The translations under genes and the position numbers were made by a program. The notes beneath the pieces were generated by a model that made no database searches, had not been told where the DNA came from, and worked only from the letters and a program-made list of their open reading frames with translations. Of a DNA stretch of 64,000 bases, positions 918 to 59,201 are shown piece by piece. The DNA comes from Perkinsela sp. CCAP 1560/9. Lineage: Eukaryota; Protista; Euglenozoa: Kinetoplastea. Position 1 is the first letter of the stretch; every line of letters begins with the position of its first letter. The stretch spans positions 186,001-250,000 of the forward strand of contig CBFFSA010000013.1 of assembly GCA_965644495.1 (NCBI GenBank), written 5' to 3'.

Positions 918-1652
918 ATGGCAGGAAACGGTAAAACTACCGAGGGCGTACAGAAAATGGAACTTGCGTGCGCAGCTTTGCTATCCGGAAACTTTAGTTC
1001 ACGAAACGTAAGTGATGAGATACTCGTCGCTCTACGAGATGCCGTATTTGAAATTGAAGTAGACTCCAAAAACATGGAAACAAAGGAGCCAACGGAGGAA
1101 AAACCCGCGCATGAGCTTTCCTCTGCGCAGAAGCGCCTAAAGGAGATCCAGGATCAGGTTCGGCCGTATATCGGCACCATGGACGATCCTCGTTGTGGAG
1201 AACTGATCCACAAATGCCTTTTGAACGTGGGGTTCGCCAGTGAAAGTTGGATGACCCCAGAAATTGTTGCAAATGTGCGCAACGTAGTAGGAAAGGCTCC
1301 CTACATGCGATATTATGCGCAGCTCTTCACGAAGCATCCAGCTGGAGACCCACTTCCAGATGTGAGTAACAAGGGAGTTCGCCTGGTAATGTGGAGTCTA
1401 TTATGCAAGCTTGGATCTGTAATGATGTCACACCGGCTGGCGCATCACGGAAAGATCATCGCAGCAGAAAAGATAGAAGAAACACTATTGAACAACGAAC
1501 ACATCAAAGTTGATCATAGTATCGTGGCGGTTATTGCAACTGATGAGAGAGCTACGTCACAGGTGAACCTCAAGAGCTCAGCTCAAAAGTGTTATCGGGA
1601 AATTCGTGATTTTATCACCCGCCTCGTTTCACCCACACCCGGCCAACCATAA
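918..1652 (+). CDS. Hypothetical protein (244 aa), antisense to the gene cluster; probably element-borne, possibly the 3' part of a longer broken ORF
   Basis: Protein-like composition but no motif recognised; the frame stays open upstream to ~705 except for one TAG at 822-824. Confidence 0.4.
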   Translation: MAGNGKTTEGVQKMELACAALLSGNFSSRNVSDEILVALRDAVFEIEVDSKNMETKEPTEEKPAHELSSAQKRLKEIQDQVRPYIGTMDDPRCGELIHKCLLNVGFASESWMTPEIVANVRNVVGKAPYMRYYAQLFTKHPAGDPLPDVSNKGVRLVMWSLLCKLGSVMMSHRLAHHGKIIAAEKIEETLLNNEHIKVDHSIVAVIATDERATSQVNLKSSAQKCYREIRDFITRLVSPTPGQP

Positions 1653-2360
1653 AGACGAATAGGCAGAGGTTGTAAACAACCCCCGCAATTATAAGCACAT
1701 AATCCCAGAATAAGGTCAAGCCGAAAATAAAATTTGGTTTTACGAACGTCTACTTTATGATGAGTCATTTTGCTCCTCTCTTGAATCATTTGATTCAGAA
1801 GAGCCCGAAGGCTGAGTAAGTCTGTAAGAAAGTAAGAGTTGGAGGGATGAGGGAATCCAAAAAGGGGGGATGAGTAAGTCATTCAGTAATTCAGTAAACA
1901 AGACAATGCTTAATTCAGTAACCCGGGGGTCAGGTTACCATTTAAAGGTGGATTACCGTTTAAATTGCAATTTACAGGTAGAGATGTATTTACGAGTCTC
2001 TATTTACAGATAATAACGCATGGGATGGGGCAAGGAATGGGGAATAATAACGCAAGGATGGGGTGTTGTTTTGTGCAGAAATCTTCTAGTGTGCGCATTC
2101 TTGATTTTCTTTGGAATTCGTTGATGTTTAGTTACGTTTCGGGAAATTTTTGAAAAATGTGCAAACTTCGTTCAATCTTGTGGGCTTAAATAGTAAACCT
2201 CATTTTTGTGGAACTAAATGTTTTACGCCACAAGAATATAAATTAAGGTAACTTTAATTAACGTAGCATTAATAAAAGTAAAAAATTTTCTCTCGTCAGA
2301 AATTACGTTAATTAATATTTTTCTTATTTAAAGTCTCACTGGTATACTTACACTTCATTG

Positions 2361-3053
2361 TTACTTCATGCGAGAACGAAGGCCATTTTTCACAACAATA
2401 CGCGTCGCCCTCACATCGTAACTCAACATTTTTTCCAGTTCCTCCACATGTAACGTCCCCTCCAGTCTTGCATTCCCATTAACATACAACTTCATCAAGG
2501 AGGTGGGCATCAACGTAAAATCAACGTTCCCGGAAAACTGATTCTCGCTGATATTCAGCACCTCCAACAACTGTGGAAGGCACGCGAACAACAGCGGCCC
2601 GGTAAACCGATTCCGCGCAATCGACACAAACGTCAACGAGGCTGGCAAAACGTTTTGTTCAAAATTCTCACAAAATGCCCCACATTGGTTATTATTGGGC
2701 AAATATAAAAATACAAGAGTACTGGGGAGGTGGTTCCAAATTAGCGACCCCTCGAGACCGTAGTCCGCCCAATTCATACAAAACACCTCTCCCCGGGGGT
2801 CACACATAACTCCCTCCCAGCCACACCCCGGGGTGTGGGTGTCCCAGGAGGGGCGGGGGTTGGTGATCTCTCGGACAAGCTTGGCTAAAACAAATTCCAG
2901 GGGTAACGCAATCCCAGTGAGTTTGGCTGCACGGGAAGGGTGCGAAATGGATGGGGCATTTTGCGGAAAAGAGGGGGGGGTGCAATCGTCCATGCAGCCC
3001 ACATGGGACATAGCAGTGGGGTAGAAAAGGGACACCATAGCTATCGTGTACAT
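2361..3053 (-). CDS. Short leucine-rich repeat protein with LRRNT-like cap
   Basis: W..GCGWEGVMCD cap followed by LP.xL..L.L..N.F.G repeats; paralogous to 23938-24564 and 62195-62836; start may be a downstream Met. Confidence 0.85.
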   Translation of the reverse strand: MYTIAMVSLFYPTAMSHVGCMDDCTPPSFPQNAPSISHPSRAAKLTGIALPLEFVLAKLVREITNPRPSWDTHTPGCGWEGVMCDPRGEVFCMNWADYGLEGSLIWNHLPSTLVFLYLPNNNQCGAFCENFEQNVLPASLTFVSIARNRFTGPLLFACLPQLLEVLNISENQFSGNVDFTLMPTSLMKLYVNGNARLEGTLHVEELEKMLSYDVRATRIVVKNGLRSRMK

Positions 3054-3062
3054 TGAGATATA

Positions 3063-3929
3063 CTCCTCCTCGCATTGATTTTTATAAATATGTATTATAA
3101 CAAAAAAGAAAATTTATATTTATAATTATTAAAATCAATGAGAATGCTTTCCAAAGATACCGGAGACCCGCCAGTAAACGACCCCCGGTAAGAGAGATTG
3201 GCTTGGGAGGCTGGCTGGTTGGCGGGGCTGAACGGGCGGGGGTTGTTGGACGGGTAAGGGTGGGTGAGCGGGGTGAGGGTTATTGGGAGGGCTGTGGTAC
3301 GAAGTTGTCTGGACAGAAAATGAATGCACACATGAGTAAAAGAGGTCTTAAACAGAGTGGGAATCCGAGTTCAACTCCTTTCGAAGACGTGTGTGCGAAA
3401 CACAACGTGTGTGCGATAAATGTGATATAACGACTACTTGTAGAAGGGGAAGGAGCATTTAATCAAAACAACCCAGGCTAAAGTGGACGACGGAGTTACT
3501 CGTCCTTGCGCCCTCTCCTTCCTCTAAGGTCTTGAGCGTCACACACGTCCAGTGTGTGTTAAATTTGGCCTTTGCAGGTGTATTACTAGAACAGGTTGAA
3601 GATGTATCTAACGAAACCAAAGCGCATACAGGTACATCAGGGCCCAAACTGTCCAAATACGGTCGAGGAGTTAATTTGGGATTCTTTTATTTTCACCCAC
3701 GAATTTTCAGGTTTTCATTTCGAAAACTCACCTGACACAAAATGAGGCCACAAATCGGGCACGACGAATTAACCTACGGTGCCGAGGGAATAGTGCCTCC
3801 CTCTATATTTTCTAGCATGTCGTGAAAGCTTTGTGCGAATATAATCAAATTTATTGATTTCACAATTTTTATAATTTTTTTTTTCGAAAATTCTATCTTG
3901 CCATTTATAAAAATCAATGAGAGACAGAG
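3063..3929. mobile_element. Non-autonomous TA-flanked TIR element (Tc1/mariner-type MITE)
   Basis: TA|CTCCTCCTCGCATTGATTTTTATAAA ... TTTATAAAAATCAATGAGAGACAGAG|TA; the internal G-rich block 3175-3280 resembles 51675-51790 in reverse. Confidence 0.6.
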
Positions 3930-3935
3930 TAGATA

Positions 3936-4235
3936 CCATCCCCCCTATATAATAGGGCTATGTGTCACCCCCCTTTAACAGGGCCATTTTGTCTGGAAGG
4001 CCAAAAAGAGATTTCAGGGAAAGTGCCAAAAAATTGTTGAATGCGCCGCGAAGCGGCGGATTCTTTTTCCGTATCTACCAAAAGTGTATCAAAAGGGAGT
4101 AGGACCTTGTTTCTTAACGATAAAAAAGCCGTGAGGCGGCGCCGATTTGTTTCTTTCATATTATTTTCCATGTCCCCCCATTTATTAAGGCCTTTTGCCC
4201 AAAATCGGAGTCCTATTAAATAGGGGGGGTAGTAG
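3936..4235. mobile_element. ~300-bp pogo-like MITE
   Basis: TA|CCATCCCCCCTATATAATAGG ... CCTATTAAATAGGGGGGGTAGTAG|TA; same terminus type as 51125; internal CGCCGC-GAA-GCGGCG hairpin at 4044-4058. Confidence 0.6.
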
Positions 4236-4361
<126 letters not shown>

Positions 4362-5825
4362 CAGTAACTCAAAAAAGTGTTCAAATGTTTCGACATTTTT
4401 TAATGTTTTAATTTTTTACCAAAGAGAATCAGAGGATAATGCTGTAGTATATGGTAGTAGTGTAGGCTGGGGTAGTGCTTATATCCCCACGTACTTTGAG
4501 TTCATCAACGATCTTACTACGAAAAACTACGAAAAACTATGAAAGATATAATGTCAATCCAACATATGAACACTTTTTTGCCTTTTTTTCGGACACGTTT
4601 TTTTATAGGAAAACGTTCTATTGCTTCACCCTTAATGGGCCAAAATATTTAGACTTAATACTTAGTAAGTCCCCCCTTCGCCCTGATGACTTCCCTCAAA
4701 CGACGGGGCATGCTTTGGACAAGAGGGAGGCATGCACTTGGAGGAACTTTCGCCCATGCTTTTTGGGACCGTTCCCATAACTCGATCATTCCTGAGGGTG
4801 GGTCGGGGTAATCTGCCGTTGCCTTTTTCAATTCAACCCATAGATTTTCTATGGGGTTTAAGTCGGGAGACTGAGGGGGCCAGTCAAGCACACACAGCTC
4901 CTGCAAATTTTAAACATCGCGAGCCTTCTTACTCGTGTGCTTCGGATCGTTATCCTGTTGGAAGACGATCCGATCCTTCGTGAGACTCAGCTTTTGTAGG
5001 AAAGGGGGCAAATTTTGTTGCAGTATTTGAACGTACTGCTCGGCGTTCATATTCCCGTGAACCAGCTCAATGGTTCTCACACCGTGCTCCATCATGCAAC
5101 CCCATATCATGATGGAGCCGCCACCATAATTGAGCGTACCTTGTGTGTTTCGCTCAGACAGCTCCTCCCCAAAGTCTACCCAAACCCACCGGCTACCATC
5201 CGACTCGAAACGGCAGATCTTCGTTTCATCCGTGAAAATTACACGGCCCCAGTCGGCGTGCGTCCAATGCTCGTACTTTCTTGTAAAAGCAAGACGTAGA
5301 GCCTTGTGACGTTTCGTAAGGTAGGGCTTCTTGACCCTCTTCTTTCCCTTCATACCACGCTTACGAAGGGAAACCCGAATGGTTTCCGGGCAAACATCCG
5401 CAATACCTTTGACTCTCAACCTTTTGCTGGCGGCAACTGCGTCTTTTGTGGCGCCGCTAGTGATGAGACGGCGGACGCGCCTACGGCAAGTATCACTCAG
5501 CTTACGTGGGCGACCGGTTGGTTGTCTAGATAGCGACGGAAGATATTTATTTTTAATGCGGCTGACATTTCCTACGCTTAAGTTTAAATCGGCGGCCACT
5601 CTACGAAGTGAAGATCCGTTTTCAAGTTTTTCAATAGCAATCTTTCGTAAATAACTCGGTGTACTGTGCATAAGTAATGTAGTAAATAGAGCAACTTGGT
5701 TTTATTTTCCTATTGTAGATCTTTGTTCTACTATGCACAGTACACCGAGTTATTTCCAAATATTTCCAAAATCAGACAAAATACAAGACCTGTAGGGGGG
5801 GGGTAAAAGAGGCTGAACACCACTG
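4362..5825 (-). mobile_element. Tc1-family DNA transposon (ends TA|CAGT ... ACTG|TA, TIRs poorly matched)
   Basis: Contains a DD34E transposase; both ends begin CAGT and share GTGTTCA; bounded by TAGA arrays. Confidence 0.75.
4655..5671 (-). pseudogene. Tc1 transposase (DD34E) with one in-frame TAA at 4910-4912
   Basis: N-terminal HTH, GRPRKL, VIFTDETK, GGGSIMIWGCM, FQQDNDPKH, WPPQSPDLNPIENLW; exactly 34 codons between D2 and E when read through the stop. Confidence 0.93.
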
Positions 5826-6961: not shown

Positions 6962-7305
6962 TTTTTCACCTGCGATCACAACCTGTACATGATCCAAATA
7001 CAACACCGCTCCCCACCCGTGTAAATGGGCGTGCTGTGGATCATACTTTGGGTCCACTCCTGAAGATCCATCCGAGCGGCATACGGCAGAGGGCTCAGTT
7101 CGTACAAACGTTTTGGATCACGGTTTAAAGCGTTAATGCGCCTTCTTACTAACTTCAAAGTAAAATGATGCTCCGGAATCGATTTCCCCAAAACCAAAGT
7201 TTGGAAATGGGCCAACGCAAGACATTCCTGCATCCAAGCGAGAAGCTGAGGTACGAAGTGTGCTTCGAGGTAAGGTTGCGAGAACTGGCGGTAATAGCAA
7301 ACCGC
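6962..7305 (-). pseudogene. VIPER/TATE-like (tyrosine-recombinase retrotransposon) RT-RNase H relic
   Basis: VLGKSIPEHHFTLKLVRRRINALNR and, after a frameshift or deletion, LHGWGAVLYLDHVQVVIAGEK; these recall the trypanosome VIPER motifs IKAVRRRLSALNRG and DASLHGWGAVF..IAGGKW. Confidence 0.7.
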
Positions 7306-51908: not shown

Positions 51909-52553
51909 TTAATCAAGGTTTCGGCGCGCATTAGCGCTTTTTACAGACTGACGTATGTGCCGTCGGGATACCAAAAGAGGGGTAAACAAACTTCGAAGAA
52001 AACAAAATATAAGTACGAATAAAACAACCCCCATAACAAAGGAATAAATATACCCCATCCTGCGTTGCCGCGCAGGTAGGAGTCTCATAAAAAGTCGCAT
52101 ACGTGCAGGATCCCCAGGAACCCGCGTGCCTCGATAATACGCTGACGTTGGGTCTAAGAGTAGTGCCCGAGCCTGCTTAAGCTCAGACGCTCTGGCACGA
52201 CCATGTGGGGAGTTGGGGTCACAAACTGCGGATTTAGTTTTAAAAGACCTTTCAATGTCATCTTTTGTTGCCGTGGCCGCATTTAATCCCAAAACGTGAA
52301 GAGGATCACTGTGGAGAAGAAAAAGTTCCTGCTCGCGTGCTTCGCCCGAGAACGTGTTCGCAGAGTCGTGAGTATGATTAAACATCTCCCAACCTCTTGC
52401 ACTTGAGCTCGCCTGCCGAATATTCGACGTAAAAATGGGAATGGCGGAGTCTATCGTGCCTGATCGGAGAGAACAATGGGAAACTACAGGTGCTGTATGA
52501 CCTCGAAAGCGCTGTGCTAGGTAGCAAATAACGGCCTTTTTGCTACTATTCAT
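51909..52553 (-). CDS. J-domain-like membrane protein, probably mitochondrial
   Basis: Presequence-like start; DPLHVLGL...DDIERSFK...CDPN...LKQARALLLDP; C-terminal TM. Confidence 0.7.
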   Translation of the reverse strand: MNSSKKAVICYLAQRFRGHTAPVVSHCSLRSGTIDSAIPIFTSNIRQASSSARGWEMFNHTHDSANTFSGEAREQELFLLHSDPLHVLGLNAATATKDDIERSFKTKSAVCDPNSPHGRARASELKQARALLLDPTSAYYRGTRVPGDPARMRLFMRLLPARQRRMGYIYSFVMGVVLFVLIFCFLRSLFTPLLVSRRHIRQSVKSANARRNLD

Positions 52554-52744: not shown

Positions 52745-54547
52745 TTACCCTTCTAAAAGTGCGAACTGAAAATGAACCTGGGAGGCCAGCTTTTCTAAGC
52801 TGTCCCTTGCGGATTGTGGCGTGCAACCACGTGCTGCAATCCAACCCAATGCCGTGCTTCGATGGGGTGGTGGGTGAAGTTCCTGGCCCACAGACCAGTA
52901 CAGCTGATGTCCTACGTAACAAGGGTCATCGAGAACACTCGGTACCACCCATTGATCACGCAAAACTGCTGCCACCGAACATGGAGGGAAGTTTAAAGTA
53001 GCGACATATTGGTTCGCTGAGAGCGTATGCGGATATAAAGCTGGGGTGATAAAGTGAAACGTGTTTGTGTTGTCCGATGATTTGGAAGTTTCAGAGTCTC
53101 CTGCGTTCAAAAGGGGTGTAGTAGGGTGTTCAACGTGAACTGCACTGATAAATTTCACTGTGGGATGCGCGGTGACAGGAAGCGAACAGTTTCGTAAAAA
53201 CGTATTTTCCGCAAGCTTCCAGACATGTTCCTTAATCGGATATGCGGCTTTCGCACGAGCATGAATGGTAGGAGAAAGTCCGCACGCGATGCGACAATAT
53301 TGTACTGCCAGATCAATTCCTGTGACAGCTAAATTCAGCGCGTGCGTTTCCGCAGCACCGAGTCTGAGGTTGACTTCTACAACGTATGCTTTATTTCTGC
53401 GCATGTCATATTTGGCTTCAAAATGCATAACAGTGTTTAATTGCGAGCCATGTATGGCAACAAACTTTCTTGTGAGACAAATGAGCTTCTCCAGCGCCTC
53501 GCTCGGTAGCGCACTTGGGGCTAGTCCTCCCGATTCCACAAAATATGGCGCACTATGCGGAGCGCAATTATCAGAAACCAAGGCATACTGTAAGTCTCCA
53601 TGGTGAATGACGCAGTCAATGTCCACTTCTGGGCCTTCTATGTATTCTTCAATTAGCACAGAGAGTGGTGTACCTAGTGCATTCCAGTGATCTCGTTCCT
53701 TCTCATTGAAAGCAGATTGTGTGTTTGACAAGCAGCGGATAGGAGTCGATGGCGATTGCTCAGTATTCACGCGTTCGGATTCGTCGCTCACGTTTTCTTC
53801 ATAAGGTAAAGTGGGTGGCGTTGGAATGTTTCCGCCATTTGATTTATTGAGAATACCCAATACGTTTTGAGCTGCACACTTGAGTTGTGCATAGTCTTCG
53901 CATTTTTGTACCAAAGCCCCACCAGCACCGGGATTGGGCTTTACAATTAAAGGAAATTGTATCAAGTGCGAGCAGTGCACTGCTCGCATTTTTGTTCCCG
54001 TTTCTATTTTAGACATTCGGTCTGCATCAGTGATTAGCCCGCCTTCATTGTCCGCCAATAAGCGAAGAATTCCTTCTAGTTCGCCCAACGTACGAATGCT
54101 ACGACTCCATGGGGCGCACAACCCTGTGTCGTGGCACCAATTTCTAAATCGAGCTTTGTCATGAGTGCAACGGATTACCTCGACAGGCGCAGGACACGAA
54201 ATTTTACCCAGAGCAGTTGCTAGCGCCGCGGCTGGATAAACCCCATACTCGTCGAAGGAGAGAACACCGTCAATAAGTGCTTCCGATGGGTAACTTCTTA
54301 CTTGTAACGACTCAATTTCCTGTTGCACATGTGCTATCATAGGCTCAACCTTCTGCGTGTCGGTAAGAATCCATTTCCACACGTAAGGAGTCGCCCAACT
54401 TACAACATGGGGGTGTACCATCACTATGCGAACTCCCGATTCGTACAGTGTGCGATAGGCGACGACTCGACTGTCACTACTCGTCCTGACAAACAAGACG
54501 CATTTCCCTTCCAGCTCTTGCCCCTTGATATTCGGTGATGACATCAC
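52745..54547 (-). CDS. ATP-grasp ligase (carnosine synthase / L-amino-acid ligase-like)
   Basis: DGVLSFDE, HDKARFR, FPLIVKP..GAG, IEEYIEGPEVDID, HFEAK, VEVNLRLG. Confidence 0.85.
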   Translation of the reverse strand: MMSSPNIKGQELEGKCVLFVRTSSDSRVVAYRTLYESGVRIVMVHPHVVSWATPYVWKWILTDTQKVEPMIAHVQQEIESLQVRSYPSEALIDGVLSFDEYGVYPAAALATALGKISCPAPVEVIRCTHDKARFRNWCHDTGLCAPWSRSIRTLGELEGILRLLADNEGGLITDADRMSKIETGTKMRAVHCSHLIQFPLIVKPNPGAGGALVQKCEDYAQLKCAAQNVLGILNKSNGGNIPTPPTLPYEENVSDESERVNTEQSPSTPIRCLSNTQSAFNEKERDHWNALGTPLSVLIEEYIEGPEVDIDCVIHHGDLQYALVSDNCAPHSAPYFVESGGLAPSALPSEALEKLICLTRKFVAIHGSQLNTVMHFEAKYDMRRNKAYVVEVNLRLGAAETHALNLAVTGIDLAVQYCRIACGLSPTIHARAKAAYPIKEHVWKLAENTFLRNCSLPVTAHPTVKFISAVHVEHPTTPLLNAGDSETSKSSDNTNTFHFITPALYPHTLSANQYVATLNFPPCSVAAVLRDQWVVPSVLDDPCYVGHQLYWSVGQELHPPPHRSTALGWIAARGCTPQSARDSLEKLASQVHFQFALLEG

Positions 54548-54934: not shown

Positions 54935-56230
54935 TCATTTCTGCCTATTTTTTCTTTTCGCTCGTTTCCGCTCTTTTCTGATGGCTTTTTTACTTTGATT
55001 CTTGCTCTTAGATTTTCCTCCCCTCATGGCACTTTTACATCCTGGTGTAGGTGTCGGGTATATACCTGCAAAAAGATTTATCACGCCCGGGTTAGCCATT
55101 CCTGGTGTTTGGCGTGCCGATGAGGGAGGCTTCGCAGAGACATGATATTTTGCACTAGAACCTTGAACTACGCTAGGAAACAAGCCCCGCGTAACAGGAT
55201 CAGCGATGTTGAGTATGCCCGGAATCCAGTGCACTTGTAAATGACAATTTTCTTCGAACAGTAAATTTTGCAGTTCCTTGATCCATATCCATTGTCGTTT
55301 TTCTACAAACTGTTCGCGCCTTCGATCCGCCCCTCGCAGTATTAAATCTGCATCTGGTAAGAGGCATTTCTCAAACTTGATTTGTTCCAGTGCACGAACA
55401 AGTCCTATAGCATCACTGAAAACATGCAAGGTCCGCAGTCCAGTAAACGTGGCCAGCGCATGTGTAATTCCATGTACGGCCGCCAAGAGCTCCTCGTCAT
55501 GGGTACCGCGCCTTATAAATTCCAAGCTGTACGCAGCACTTTCGATGGCAAAGCGTGTAGGCGCGAGGTGAACCAGTCCCCAGCCATGACGCGAGGCATC
55601 AATAAAAACCGCAGAGGAACTGACCGGTAGCGGCTCGATGGTATGTTTACGCCTTCGGCAGCTGGCTCGTACTACGTTCCATCCTTCCGTTCCAACACAA
55701 TAAAACAGATCCGTGACCATGTGACGAACCCAGTCCTCCATCTTCCACTGACTAAGAGTGATCAGCACCTTCTGACACATGCTTCGAGACTGCTCTACAA
55801 AGGATGGGTTGCCGCCGGGGTCTGGAGTATTCCGAGAAGCGCGGAAACGCCGTTTCGCTGCACGACTCTCCGCCCTATCTATCTGCCGGAAAACTGCTCT
55901 TCGTACTTGATCGATATGCGCCATTTTACGTATTTGCCGTGTCTCGCTTGAACCTATTTCCCTTTCTAGCTTAAATCGGCTCACTCTGACACCCAAATAC
56001 GGTATATTATTTTGCTCTTGAGCATTTTTTTGAGCGTTTTTCTTTTTGTTTCTTTTTTTCTTCTTAGTTGTGAGTAAAGCAGAGGTTCCGTGAAAACAAC
56101 AAAAACTAAAAGACTGTAACTTGTTTAGAATGGGTGTCGATAAATTTCCGCGCGTAAAGAACTTAGTAGAGGCAACTCCTGCACTCCTAACCATTAGTTT
56201 TCCGATCATCCCTATCATGGACATTCCCAC
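54935..56230 (-). CDS. Retroelement-type (VIPER/DIRS-like) RNase H domain protein with presequence-like N-terminus and basic tails
   Basis: FIDASRHGWG, THDEELLA, HVFSDA, VHWIPGILNIADPVTRG (D-E-D-D); no RT domain in the ORF. Confidence 0.8.
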   Translation of the reverse strand: MGMSMIGMIGKLMVRSAGVASTKFFTRGNLSTPILNKLQSFSFCCFHGTSALLTTKKKKRNKKKNAQKNAQEQNNIPYLGVRVSRFKLEREIGSSETRQIRKMAHIDQVRRAVFRQIDRAESRAAKRRFRASRNTPDPGGNPSFVEQSRSMCQKVLITLSQWKMEDWVRHMVTDLFYCVGTEGWNVVRASCRRRKHTIEPLPVSSSAVFIDASRHGWGLVHLAPTRFAIESAAYSLEFIRRGTHDEELLAAVHGITHALATFTGLRTLHVFSDAIGLVRALEQIKFEKCLLPDADLILRGADRRREQFVEKRQWIWIKELQNLLFEENCHLQVHWIPGILNIADPVTRGLFPSVVQGSSAKYHVSAKPPSSARQTPGMANPGVINLFAGIYPTPTPGCKSAMRGGKSKSKNQSKKAIRKERKRAKRKNRQK

Positions 56231-56699
56231 TTGCTCGACAGCATCTCGAAATATTTACTTGTGTATTCAAGTCAAAACAAGAAAAGATAGAACGTGTAAT
56301 ATTAAAATTCGTACGTTAGACAAAATAAAATTGTAGCACACCCTTTAAAATTTGTATCAAGCGGATATCGGAATCTGCTGGACTATTACAAAGATACAAC
56401 GTATAGCCGCGCAACCTTTGCAAGTATGTATTCACGGAAACCTTAAAAGTACATAAACGCAGAAAAGATTACGTTGGCGTCAGTCAGACAAAGCTGCTGG
56501 TCAGTACTGTCCCAAGGTTCAATAGTGTTTGGGTACATTTAAAATACATTTTTTAATCGATACAAGCTTCATATAATGTTTGCAGAAATATTGAGTATTG
56601 TAGCATTAAAAGCGTAAAAACGTCAAGAATATACTACATTGTGTGGCATGTTATGTAATATAGTAGAGCAGATCGCCGGCGGTGGGGGTACATTTAATA

Positions 56700-57305
56700 T
56701 TAAGTTGTAGCACTAACTGTATCAAATAGTGCCGTTTGCTTTGATAAATTTCCGGGATGTTCCTTTTCCTCGGCTGTGGCTTTCTGCGCGTTTGCCTCAT
56801 TGGCCCGTACCAGATCTTCTGGACATCCCCCGTGGTCGTGTGCCATGCACGCCTCGACAACCCGACCTACACGGAAGTTGCCGCACTGCACACAGGCCTT
56901 CATTACCCAACTCCAGGTCTCACCATTCGACTTGATCTTGTTCCGGTGCTCCATTTCCTCAATGATGTCCAACATCGCACACACTTTACTTTCCCCGGGT
57001 GTTGCATCCTTTTGCTTCTTCTCGCACTCGTAGATTCTTTGAAGCGCGGTGTTGTACGTCGCTAGGTCGGGCGGAGTGTTTTGAAGATTCATTTGCACCA
57101 TTAGATCTCCAGCTTCGTCGTAATATTGCACTTTTTTAATTTTTTCCATCCAGGGTTGGGTGTTGGTGCTCACTTCATATCCAAACAGATCGTATTTCTT
57201 GGTCGAGGTGGCGCAGTGTCGGACAGCTGTAGGGACAACCAATGTACCAACACAGGACACCAAACGGTGAAGTCGGCGCATCAATATGAAGCCAATATTA
57301 AACAA
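56700..57305 (-). CDS. p18: Euglenozoan mitochondrial F1-ATPase subunit p18 (PPR protein); probable start at 57281
   Basis: KKYDLFGYEVSTNTQPW.EKIKK..YYDEAG...PPDLATYN, as in trypanosome p18. Confidence 0.93.
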   Translation of the reverse strand: MFNIGFILMRRLHRLVSCVGTLVVPTAVRHCATSTKKYDLFGYEVSTNTQPWMEKIKKVQYYDEAGDLMVQMNLQNTPPDLATYNTALQRIYECEKKQKDATPGESKVCAMLDIIEEMEHRNKIKSNGETWSWVMKACVQCGNFRVGRVVEACMAHDHGGCPEDLVRANEANAQKATAEEKEHPGNLSKQTALFDTVSATT

Positions 57306-57422: not shown

Positions 57423-59201
57423 TCAGATTTGTGGAGAATTTTCTAATTGCCGGGACTGTCTTTTCCCCTGAACTACGTTCCGAATGAAGAGTTCTCCTGC
57501 CTTGTAGCTGGAACGCACCATGGGACCACTGGCAACATAGAGAAACCCCAAATTCTCGCCGTAAGACTTGTAGTGTTCAAATTCATCGGGGTGAACAAAA
57601 CGCTCGACTTTTTTGCGGCTGCGGTCAGGCTGCAGATATTGACCCAGGGTGAGGAAGTCTACCCCCACGTCTTTGAGATCCCGCATGGACTCTTCCACCT
57701 CGCGCATAGTCTCCCCGAGCCCCACCATGAGACTCGACTTTGTGAATAGCTTTGGGTTTACCGATTTCGCGTACCGCAGCACCTGTAAGGACTGGTCGTA
57801 CGACGCACGACGGTCCCTAATATAGGGAGTAATCCGCCTAACCACTTCCAAGTTGTGGGCATAAACATGCAAACCACTATGTGCGACTTTCTCAATGCTA
57901 CTCTGCTTCCCGCGGAAATCACCCACAAGACATTCAATGAGAAGATCCCGTGAGTCGTCACCCCCTGACACAACACCAGATTCCAATACCTTTTCGCTGT
58001 CCCCTTCGTGCGGCGTAATCTCATGTTCGGTGGAGTTACCCGGCTTCATAACCAAATCCTCCTTTTGTTGGTCACCACCTTCCCCTCTCCCCTCCCTCCT
58101 CCCCCGCAAAATCTCCCCAATCGTCCTCACCACATGCCCCGCCCCCCCATCCGGAAGATCATCCCGGTCCACCATCGTAAGCACGACGTAGGACAGGTTC
58201 AGCCCCCGCAGGGCGTCTCCAATCCGCCGCGGCTCCCCCTCCTCCAGCGGCCTCGGGTCGCGCCGGGTCTGGACGCTACAGAACCGGCACCCCCGGGTGC
58301 ACTCGTGGCCCATCATCATGACGGTGGCGGTGGCGACCCCGGAGTCCCCGCCCCCCCAGCACTCCCCGATGTTGGGGCACCGTGCCTCCTCGCACACCGT
58401 GGACAGGCGGTGGGCGCGCATCTGGGCCTTGAGGCGCAGGTAGTGGGGGTAGGCGCGGGGGCCCTTGGGGAGGGCGAGGCGCAGCCACGGGGGGAGGGGG
58501 GAGCGGCCGCGGGTGGTGGGGGAGGGAATGTTGATAGGGTAGGTCGTGGTGGGGAGGGAGGGGGAGGAGGAAGTAGAAACAGAACTGTTGTGGGGCGTAG
58601 AGATCGTCTCTATAGTCTGTGTGTTGTTGTTGCTGGGAGACATAGAGATGGTCTCTATATTCTGTGTGGTGTTGGTGTTGTTGGGAGGCGTAGAAATGGT
58701 CTCTATATTCTGTGTGGTGGTGTTGTTGTTGTTATTATTGTTGGGAGACGTAGAGATACTCCCCAGAATATCTTGTGTGTTGGTGTTGTTGGGAGGAGTA
58801 AACAGGTCAAAATCTTGAGGTCCGGGCTCGGAGGCGAGTCGGGTACGGAAGTTGGTGAGAAAGGTTTGTTGGGTGGGGGTGAGTTCGGGGTGGGTGGAAT
58901 AGGGATGTGTGGTGGGGGATGTGATAGGGGGAGGGAACGTATGGAGATGGTGGGTGGTGCGAGTCGGGGGGTTGAGCTTTGAGAAGGCTCGTAAAGAGGA
59001 TAGGAGTTGGGTAGAATGCATGGAGAGTACGGAGTAAAATATACAACTTGGTTGAAGTGTATGTTGATAAACACGTAAAGTGGAGTGTGGTTTAGGTGAC
59101 AAAAATGGCGTATGGTAAGGACCCCCTCTGACAGAGGTCCAACCATTTCTGGTATAATTCTTAAAGAGTTCAGTATACCATGTATTAGGGTATACAAACA
59201 C
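57423..59201 (-). CDS. LIAS: Lipoyl synthase (radical SAM); probable start at 59021
   Basis: CEEARCPNIGECW, CTRGCRFC, DRDDLPDGGA, TLGQYLQP, ASGPMVRSSYKAGE. Confidence 0.95.
   Translation of the reverse strand: MFVYPNTWYTELFKNYTRNGWTSVRGGPYHTPFLSPKPHSTLRVYQHTLQPSCIFYSVLSMHSTQLLSSLRAFSKLNPPTRTTHHLHTFPPPITSPTTHPYSTHPELTPTQQTFLTNFRTRLASEPGPQDFDLFTPPNNTNTQDILGSISTSPNNNNNNNTTTQNIETISTPPNNTNTTQNIETISMSPSNNNTQTIETISTPHNSSVSTSSSPSLPTTTYPINIPSPTTRGRSPLPPWLRLALPKGPRAYPHYLRLKAQMRAHRLSTVCEEARCPNIGECWGGGDSGVATATVMMMGHECTRGCRFCSVQTRRDPRPLEEGEPRRIGDALRGLNLSYVVLTMVDRDDLPDGGAGHVVRTIGEILRGRREGRGEGGDQQKEDLVMKPGNSTEHEITPHEGDSEKVLESGVVSGGDDSRDLLIECLVGDFRGKQSSIEKVAHSGLHVYAHNLEVVRRITPYIRDRRASYDQSLQVLRYAKSVNPKLFTKSSLMVGLGETMREVEESMRDLKDVGVDFLTLGQYLQPDRSRKKVERFVHPDEFEHYKSYGENLGFLYVASGPMVRSSYKAGELFIRNVVQGKRQSRQLENSPQI
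58596..58798. repeat. Coding tandem repeat, about four units of (TQNIETIST.PNN)
   Basis: Repeated GTAGARATGGTCTCTATATTCTGTGTG..TTGTTGGGAG in the N-terminal extension of lipoyl synthase. Confidence 0.8.

Follow-up and report, generated by a model that had tools for sequence, protein, structure and literature searches.

The 64,000-nucleotide stretch of Perkinsela sp. CCAP 1560/9 analysed here (the window; contig CBFFSA010000013.1, positions 186,001 to 250,000) carries on its minus strand, at 54935-56230, an intact open reading frame (ORF) that we read as a host gene with a reverse transcriptase (RT)-type RNase H fold. That the gene belongs to the host and that its domain is of this type are the firmest parts of our account and can be held with considerable confidence. 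On balance we favour an interpretation in which the RNase H was captured from a tyrosine-recombinase retrotransposon, is probably active, and is flanked by basic regions that would serve in binding or targeting. An original prediction, made from the DNA letters of the window, had proposed a retrotransposon RNase H co-opted by the host and directed to the mitochondrion. Its central idea of co-option agrees with our results, since the gene occupies one locus, has a syntenic orthologue, is accompanied by no other element parts, and finds its nearest relatives in ORFs that join RT and RNase H (RT-RH ORFs).

A retroelement-type RNase H domain

The minus-strand frame is uninterrupted over its 431 amino acids (aa) and holds all four motifs that had been quoted for it, with the putative catalytic residues D211, E247, D273 and D344. 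The ORF and the features of its domain are as follows.

54935-56230, minus strand: whole ORF, 431 aa counted from GTG, with the stop codon at 54935-54937
55169-55624, minus strand: RNase H domain, aa 203-354, delimited by alignment to homologues and retroelements, by hhalign and by the AlphaFold fold
55598-55600, minus strand: codon of putative catalytic residue D211, in the motif IDASRHGWG
55490-55492, minus strand: codon of putative catalytic residue E247, in the motif DEELLA
55412-55414, minus strand: codon of putative catalytic residue D273, in the motif FSDA
55199-55201, minus strand: codon of putative catalytic residue D344, in the motif NIADPVTRG
55295-55384, minus strand: insertion of about 30 aa (aa ~283-312) between helix B and helix D, seen in the sequence alignment and the model

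Relatives of the whole protein are very few. An exhaustive phmmer search of 1.84 billion representative proteins found two, P0002 (329 aa, E 4.7e-10) and P0003 (323 aa, E 1.3e-6), both of them short stand-alone proteins that keep the series DAS..[GA]WG, E, D[AN] and N.AD..[ST]R. A word-based search recovered the window protein itself only, and the same kind of search with the alignment recovered the window protein and P0003 only. Across the three proteins, which overall are about 30% identical, none of the four acidic residues varies. P0002 has sub-threshold Pfam matches to RT_RNaseH_2 and RT_RNaseH (E 0.002 and 0.0097). The window protein does not reach the gathering score of RT_RNaseH or RT_RNaseH_2 (PF17917 and PF17919), and it has no match to the signatures of cellular RNase H1, PF00075 or PF01693.

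The assignment to a subfamily comes from a profile of the core region of the three stand-alone proteins, which was run against the whole assembly in six frames. It gave about 85 further matches with E-values between 6.6e-7 and 1, the limit for reporting. The matches examined all lie at the C-terminal end of RT-RH ORFs of 564-1404 aa with RVT_1 and often PF17917, and no PF00075-type locus was matched in this whole-genome search. Both halves of the domain match the elements in the correct order; the elements are without the insertion of about 30 aa, a segment that is missing in retroelement domains generally in our alignment, variable across the three homologues and of low confidence in the model. 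With hhalign, the match extends over the whole domain for an element with a 999-aa ORF (L039; 97%, E 1e-10) and for one with a 1043-aa ORF (L041; 96%, E 3.6e-9), the latter having a domain that scores 27.2 bits on PF17917, above the cut-off. Controls from the same genome scored far lower, at 0.8% and 2.3% for two PF00075-type domains and 1.8% for a strong Ty3/gypsy-like domain, and a foreign Ty3/gypsy element, the sole find of a scan of prokaryote genomes and located in a metagenome-assembled genome (MAG) labelled Poribacteria, matched over 36 columns covering the C-terminal N.AD..SR motif only. The distinction originally drawn, that the domain is RT-associated rather than of the cellular RNase H1 type, is thus borne out by values of 96-97% to RT-RH ORFs and of less than 3% to PF00075-type domains. 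The tetrad is in register with 16 retroelement RNase H domains; D211, E247 and D273 are invariant in all 19 aligned sequences, and the column of D344 is at least 90% conserved across them. Outside aa 203-354 no homology to the elements was found, both the N-terminal 200 aa, compared with the RT or connection region, and the tail being without a match.

According to the model, the domain has a type 1 RNase H fold within the RNase H-like superfamily, with the D-E-D-D tetrad kept. A single-sequence AlphaFold model was unusable (pLDDT 36). A second model, based on an alignment of 19 sequences (the three homologues and the 16 element domains), reached a pLDDT of 67 and a pTM of 0.65, with 70-90 in the core, and its order of strands and helices, b1-b2-b3-aA-b4-aB-aD-b5-aE, is that of a canonical RNase H. 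Foldseek matched it to E. coli RNase HI with an E of about 1e-4, and VIA-align gave Z-scores of 11-14 over 110-129 residues for bacterial and archaeal RNase HI and for the RT RNase H of HIV, HERV-K and foamy virus. The nearest models in the Atlas are eukaryotic retroelement polyproteins, including clusters that combine a Dam methyltransferase with RT_RNaseH, a combination known from DIRS-like elements.

A single locus with conserved gene order

The gene and its intergenic flanks occur at just two places in the 21-Mb assembly, on contig C13, to which the window belongs, and on contig C2, and as DNA the gene and its spacers have no match elsewhere in the assembly. The two copies show 99.46% identity over 4.3 kb, flanks included, and the two contigs are colinear over about 50 kb and have an element relic in common. 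Because of these near-identical flanks and this colinearity, the copies are to be regarded as alleles or as a segmental copy, and not as dispersed copies of an element. When many near-identical copies embedded in full elements were looked for, what emerged was this single locus and its colinear counterpart on C2. Our scan of the flanks likewise agrees with the earlier description of ordinary gene neighbours without RT, recombinase or terminal repeats: none of these was found there, and the repeats in the flanks are short and trivial.

Conservation of the locus in relatives, proposed earlier as a check, could be followed from the genes around it.

56700-57281, minus strand: upstream neighbour, ATP-synthase subunit p18 (a PPR protein), 56-62% identical to named Trypanosoma proteins and used as synteny anchor
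52745-54547: downstream neighbour, a 600-aa ORF
51909-52553, minus strand: J-like protein, two genes downstream of the RNase H gene, with a homologue directly after the RNase H gene in L021

P0003 is encoded in a 722-kb environmental contig (locus L021) that has all its genes on one strand. The gene order there is that of the window, namely lipoyl synthase (LIAS), which in the window is located beyond p18 and further upstream of the RNase H gene, p18, P0003, J-like protein, LSM, RNase PH and protein kinase, so that L021 shares the order around the orthologue. Six neighbours are shared, with a few genes inserted or swapped between them, at 29-58% protein identity; the p18-like protein of L021 is 51% identical to the p18 of the window. 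P0002 is encoded on a 3.6-kb contig from a lake metagenome, flanked by an unknown gene and an ANF_receptor gene. A scan of metagenomes recovered only this already-known P0002 contig, and a scan of viral contigs recovered nothing. In a tree of p18, the window and the L021 contig group with the transcriptome PhM-4, a prokinetoplastid (PMC7859406), and away from Trypanosoma, with moderate support from one short protein. The RNase H gene is old and position-conserved in some lineages, yet rare.

Some other features of these loci were seen in passing. The lipoyl synthase ORF of the window (57423-59201, minus strand) has a long N-terminal extension of Asn/Thr-rich repeats (NNTNTQ..., with 'IETISTP' units) before its radical-SAM core, and some environmental kinetoplastid contigs have p18 duplicated in tandem (L060:1116-1943, L050:1170-2411).

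Origin of the domain

Retroelements of the assembly contain at least 150 RT_RNaseH matches and about 147 to RNase_H. The tyrosine-recombinase model PF00589 has matches, a large number of them above the cut-off, that lie 1.3-1.8 kb from RNase H matches on the same strand and in many copies, as in the pairs C9:758536 and C9:757013 or C4:495450 and C4:493933. In the element type with the 1043-aa ORF, the PF00589 match is read in a different frame from the RT-RH ORF and lies within its 5' third. VIPER has a layout of this kind, its tyrosine-recombinase (YR) gene (1510-2517) lying within an RT/RH gene (1386-4214) whose protein has 942 aa (PMC5146736). That the parent elements were of the tyrosine-recombinase type is supported by our data; their likeness to VIPER is one of gene layout. 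One piece of such an element lies in the window itself.

6963-7196, minus strand: decayed fragment of a tyrosine-recombinase-type retroelement, at the start of the RNase H domain, with GWGAVLYLD retained and DAS lost

The original prediction had pointed to a relic at about this place (6962-7305) as a sign of a donor family in the genome. The relic is indeed a real element fragment: an intact RT-RH ORF of 956 aa on contig C3 contains a stretch with 98% identity to it, and in the relic the DAS codons are deleted. It belongs to the second of the two element groups described below, a different one from the group nearest to the gene.

In a maximum-likelihood tree with PF00075-type domains as outgroup, the three stand-alone proteins group together (86/87), and the sister of their clade (85/88) is one group of elements of this genome; the second, recombinase-bearing group and the Ty3-like copies are further out, and the branches are long. 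Most likely, the core at aa 203-354 would have been captured long ago from a tyrosine-recombinase retrotransposon (DIRS order, VIPER-like), and at least three kinetoplastid-type genomes would have kept the domain since then, as a gene of its own at a single locus. An origin by domestication, rather than the reverse, appears likely to us from the comparison of sequences. It rests on parsimony, because the domain type is widespread in eukaryotic retroelements and the stand-alone form is found in three genomes.

Several observations concern the mobile elements of this genome and of the material that was searched. The genome is far richer in mobile elements than the trypanosomatid genomes of PMC12278014. 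At C45:30000-46500, more than 20 near-identical units follow one another in tandem at a spacing of about 750 bp, and every unit has a frame of about 250 aa with a full PF00075 match (about 62 bits). A 286-aa frame at C35:14961-15092 (L003), probably another element fragment, has a match to the family profile that is limited to the C-terminal N.AD..SR part (E about 1e-3). The MAG labelled Candidatus Poribacteria has at least six contigs (L062-L067) with the same RNase H match, and in L062, the contig examined, a Ty3/gypsy-type ORF is complete with protease, RT, RNase H and integrase; these contigs are most likely eukaryotic ones, from a host, that were mis-binned. ORFs for Tc1/mariner-like transposases, judged by translation, are present in the window at 4910-5671 (minus strand) and at L068:16-528 (minus strand).

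Predicted activity, flanking regions and location

Hydrolysis of RNA:DNA hybrids is the likely activity of the protein, because tetrad and fold are conserved at about 30% identity between syntenic orthologues. We therefore think it fairly probable that the enzyme is catalytically active and cuts the RNA strand of such hybrids. The regions on either side of the domain, non-homologous to the elements, are basic and are laid out as follows.

56224, 56218, 56209 and 56194, minus strand: candidate ATG starts of the RNase H gene, at residues 3, 5, 8 and 13
56069-56224, minus strand: N-terminus, acid-free, basic, Ser/Thr-rich and presequence-like by crude composition measures
56021-56068, minus strand: Lys-rich tract aa 55-70 (KKKKRNKKK...), read from the sequence
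55625-56020, minus strand: basic, predicted helical region aa 71-202, pI about 11
54938-55024, minus strand: Lys/Arg-rich C-terminal tail aa 403-431, read from the sequence

The acid-free N-terminus and the Lys-rich tracts near both ends, at aa 55-70 and 403-431, are those described originally; counted from the first ATG, the first acidic residue of the window protein comes about 70 residues in. The region at aa 71-202 is weakly conserved across the three homologues. The flanking regions would probably supply nucleic-acid binding, targeting or both, and the basic helical region together with the tails may give the grip on the substrate that RT gives in the parent polyprotein. The earlier and more specific suggestion that basic tails replace a hybrid-binding domain is weakened by the homologues: P0003 has a C-terminal basic tail similar to that of the window protein, but P0002 has none.

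As for location, the mitochondrion is the first candidate, at somewhat short of an even chance, and the nucleus comes behind it as a tentative second, both judged from features of the termini. All three proteins can start with a stretch of 24-70 residues that opens with M-x-R, is acid-free, basic and hydroxyl-rich, and resembles the mitochondrial p18 of the window; for this, translation would have to begin at Met13 in the window ORF and, in L021, at an in-frame ATG further upstream. The gene call of the sequence collection places the start at residue 5, for a protein of 427 aa. In L021 (9785-10000), P0003 probably starts further upstream than its gene call has it: the frame stays open for another 72 codons, and two in-frame ATGs there would give P0003 an acid-free, Arg-rich extra N-terminus of 43 aa (or 18 aa).

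An extended form of the original prediction would have the kinetoplast acquire a retrotransposon RNase H early in the evolution of kinetoplastids and, in lineages such as that of the window, use it as the main organellar hybrid nuclease for removal of primers or R-loops in kinetoplast DNA (kDNA); this is in our view distinctly unlikely. In Crithidia fasciculata, RNH1 gives rise to nuclear and mitochondrial isoforms (work cited in PMC2743194) and is a known candidate for the removal of kDNA primers, and primer removal in the mitochondrion of trypanosomatids also involves SSE1 and PIF5 (PMC2743194, PMC10719067).

Upstream region and base composition

The region ahead of the gene and the composition of the coding sequence were also considered.

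56231-56290, minus strand: region ahead of the gene, in which AG dinucleotides come after a pyrimidine tract (about 56271-56290), read off the sequence

The pyrimidine tract and the AG dinucleotides form a candidate trans-splice acceptor, which fits what is expected in kinetoplastids. An upstream ORF of nine codons (ATG...TGA; window 56231-56260, minus strand) overlaps the first in-frame ATG of the RNase H gene. The G+C content is 0.47-0.52 within the ORF and 0.37-0.38 in the flanking spacers, and neighbouring genes are alike in this respect. Codon usage and GC3 are uninformative on how long the gene has resided in the genome, because they do not separate host genes from retroelement ORFs there.

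Weighing of the interpretation

A number of results weigh against a captured and mitochondrial RNase H or lessen the force of the argument for it. Sequence searches of Pfam, NCBIfam and the PDB with the window protein gave no match (for Pfam even at E 10), nor did a PDB search with the three-sequence profile, and the homology to retroelements rests on that three-sequence profile. The confidence of the AlphaFold model is moderate. For the element group that the tree places nearest to the gene, the indication of a recombinase is weak, with near-full coverage of the model at an E of 0.015, and searches of PDB and NCBIfam gave no confirmation of it. The direction of transfer is unproven, because an alternative tree with all element domains in one clade that excludes the family keeps a p of 0.27 in the AU test. 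The coding sequences on C2 and C13 differ at three nucleotides (two synonymous changes and V83E), too few for a ratio of non-synonymous to synonymous rates (dN/dS), and the orthologues have diverged too far for one. Beside p18 there is no orthologue in T. brucei or T. cruzi, nor is there one downstream of p18 in eight environmental contigs that bear this gene, four of which are longer than 5 kb. Finally, the Lys tracts fit nuclear targeting as well, and P0002 is without the tail.

The explanations that would deny the domain a retroelement ancestry or the gene a function fare worse than capture and retention. A very divergent cellular RNase H1 might be suspected from the fold search, where bacterial and archaeal RNase HI top the list, but similarity of fold cannot separate the subfamilies, the motifs are of the RT type, and to the lack of PF00075 and PF01693 matches are added hhalign values below 3% for the two PF00075-type domains of the genome; we find this reading scarcely credible. 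Hardly less improbable is a functionless leftover or a piece of a non-autonomous retroelement. The genome is full of element fragments, one of them in the window, which is the setting in which such a leftover could be expected; against it stand an intact ORF at a unique locus between ordinary genes, with no repeats or other element parts, and a syntenic orthologue that at about 30% identity keeps every catalytic residue. Transfer in the other direction, with an old kinetoplastid host RNase H giving its module to the local tyrosine-recombinase retroelements, or exchanging it with them, has somewhat more in its favour and is still very improbable. A position of the family outside all element domains is not rejected by the AU test; VIPER-like RNase H stands apart from that of other tyrosine-recombinase elements, for which domain exchange has been proposed, and P0003 is weakly matched by the model for hepadnaviral RNase H, a type placed next to VIPER in the same study (PMC6681497). 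The DAS..GWG / N.AD..SR type of domain is, however, found in retroelements across eukaryotes and the stand-alone form in three genomes only among the 1.84 billion representative proteins, and the best tree nests the family among element domains.

A different kind of alternative accepts the same origin and places the protein in the nucleus or nucleolus, as a host RNase H that would remove R-loops or restrain retroelements by breaking down the template strand of their RNA:cDNA hybrids. A likeness to nuclear signals of the classical type is seen in the run KKKKRNKKK (aa 55-63) and in the K/R-rich tails with which the window protein and P0003 end, and the RT_RNaseH and RNase_H matches counted above show a genome in which retroelements abound. 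When a cellular RNase H1 was sought in the assembly, no PF01693 match was found, and the PF00075 loci examined were copies of multi-copy elements or debris. What speaks for the mitochondrion, on the other hand, is that all three homologues can begin with the acid-free and basic sequence also seen in p18, and that P0002 is without a Lys-rich tract. We place this nuclear alternative on the unlikely side, and retain the broader interpretation of a captured, probably active RNase H whose basic flanks would bind or target.

Comparison with known systems and significance

The closest comparison is with the RT/RH of tyrosine-recombinase retrotransposons (DIRS order, including VIPER and TATE; PMC6681497, PMC5146736), which has the same DAS..GWG, E, DN and N.AD..SR in register; in one element type of this genome the recombinase ORF is nested, like that of VIPER, within the RT-RH ORF towards its 5' end. 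The window domain differs from the RT/RH of VIPER and TATE in that it stands alone, without RT, Gag or recombinase, has unrelated basic termini and the insertion of about 30 aa, and occupies a single syntenic locus. A VIPER-derived 'domesticated gene', the one case of retroelement domestication in kinetoplastids known to us from publications, has been described in Leishmaniinae and is likewise a single-copy, syntenic kinetoplastid host gene derived from RT/RH and without other element parts (PMC5146736). That gene is found in Leishmaniinae only, encodes about 980 aa next to a Zn-finger/RanBP gene, and was reported not to conserve the RT and RH motifs (PMC5146736). The window gene, in contrast, encodes 431 aa at another locus, consists of RNase H only with the full tetrad, and by the p18 tree lies outside the Trypanosoma clade. 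With the RNase H1 of trypanosomatids it has the fold and the likely chemistry in common, but that enzyme is of a different family, combining PF00075 with a hybrid-binding domain, neither of which is matched by the window protein. Beyond kinetoplastids, a precedent for a kept retroelement RNase H is given by CGIN1 and NYNRIN, vertebrate host genes from a retroviral RNase H and integrase; these differ in coming from a retrovirus, in keeping the integrase and in belonging to another lineage. To our knowledge, host genes from retroelement RNase H domains are rare. Judged by its tetrad, the gene is the first catalytically intact derivative of a retroelement that consists of RNase H only to be found for kinetoplastids in the literature searched. 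The family is unnamed and without a Pfam model, and the type of event, domestication of a transposable-element gene, is already known.

If the protein is active, an unrecognised RNase H would be added to the nucleic-acid metabolism of kinetoplastids. The gene would further give a starting point for work on the unusual phylogeny reported for VIPER-like RNase H (PMC6681497). Were the protein mitochondrial, it would bear on the identity of the primer-removing enzymes of kDNA replication, and should it be, as we think distinctly unlikely, the hybrid nuclease of the kinetoplast, the enzyme of a selfish element would have taken over a core step in the maintenance of an organelle genome.

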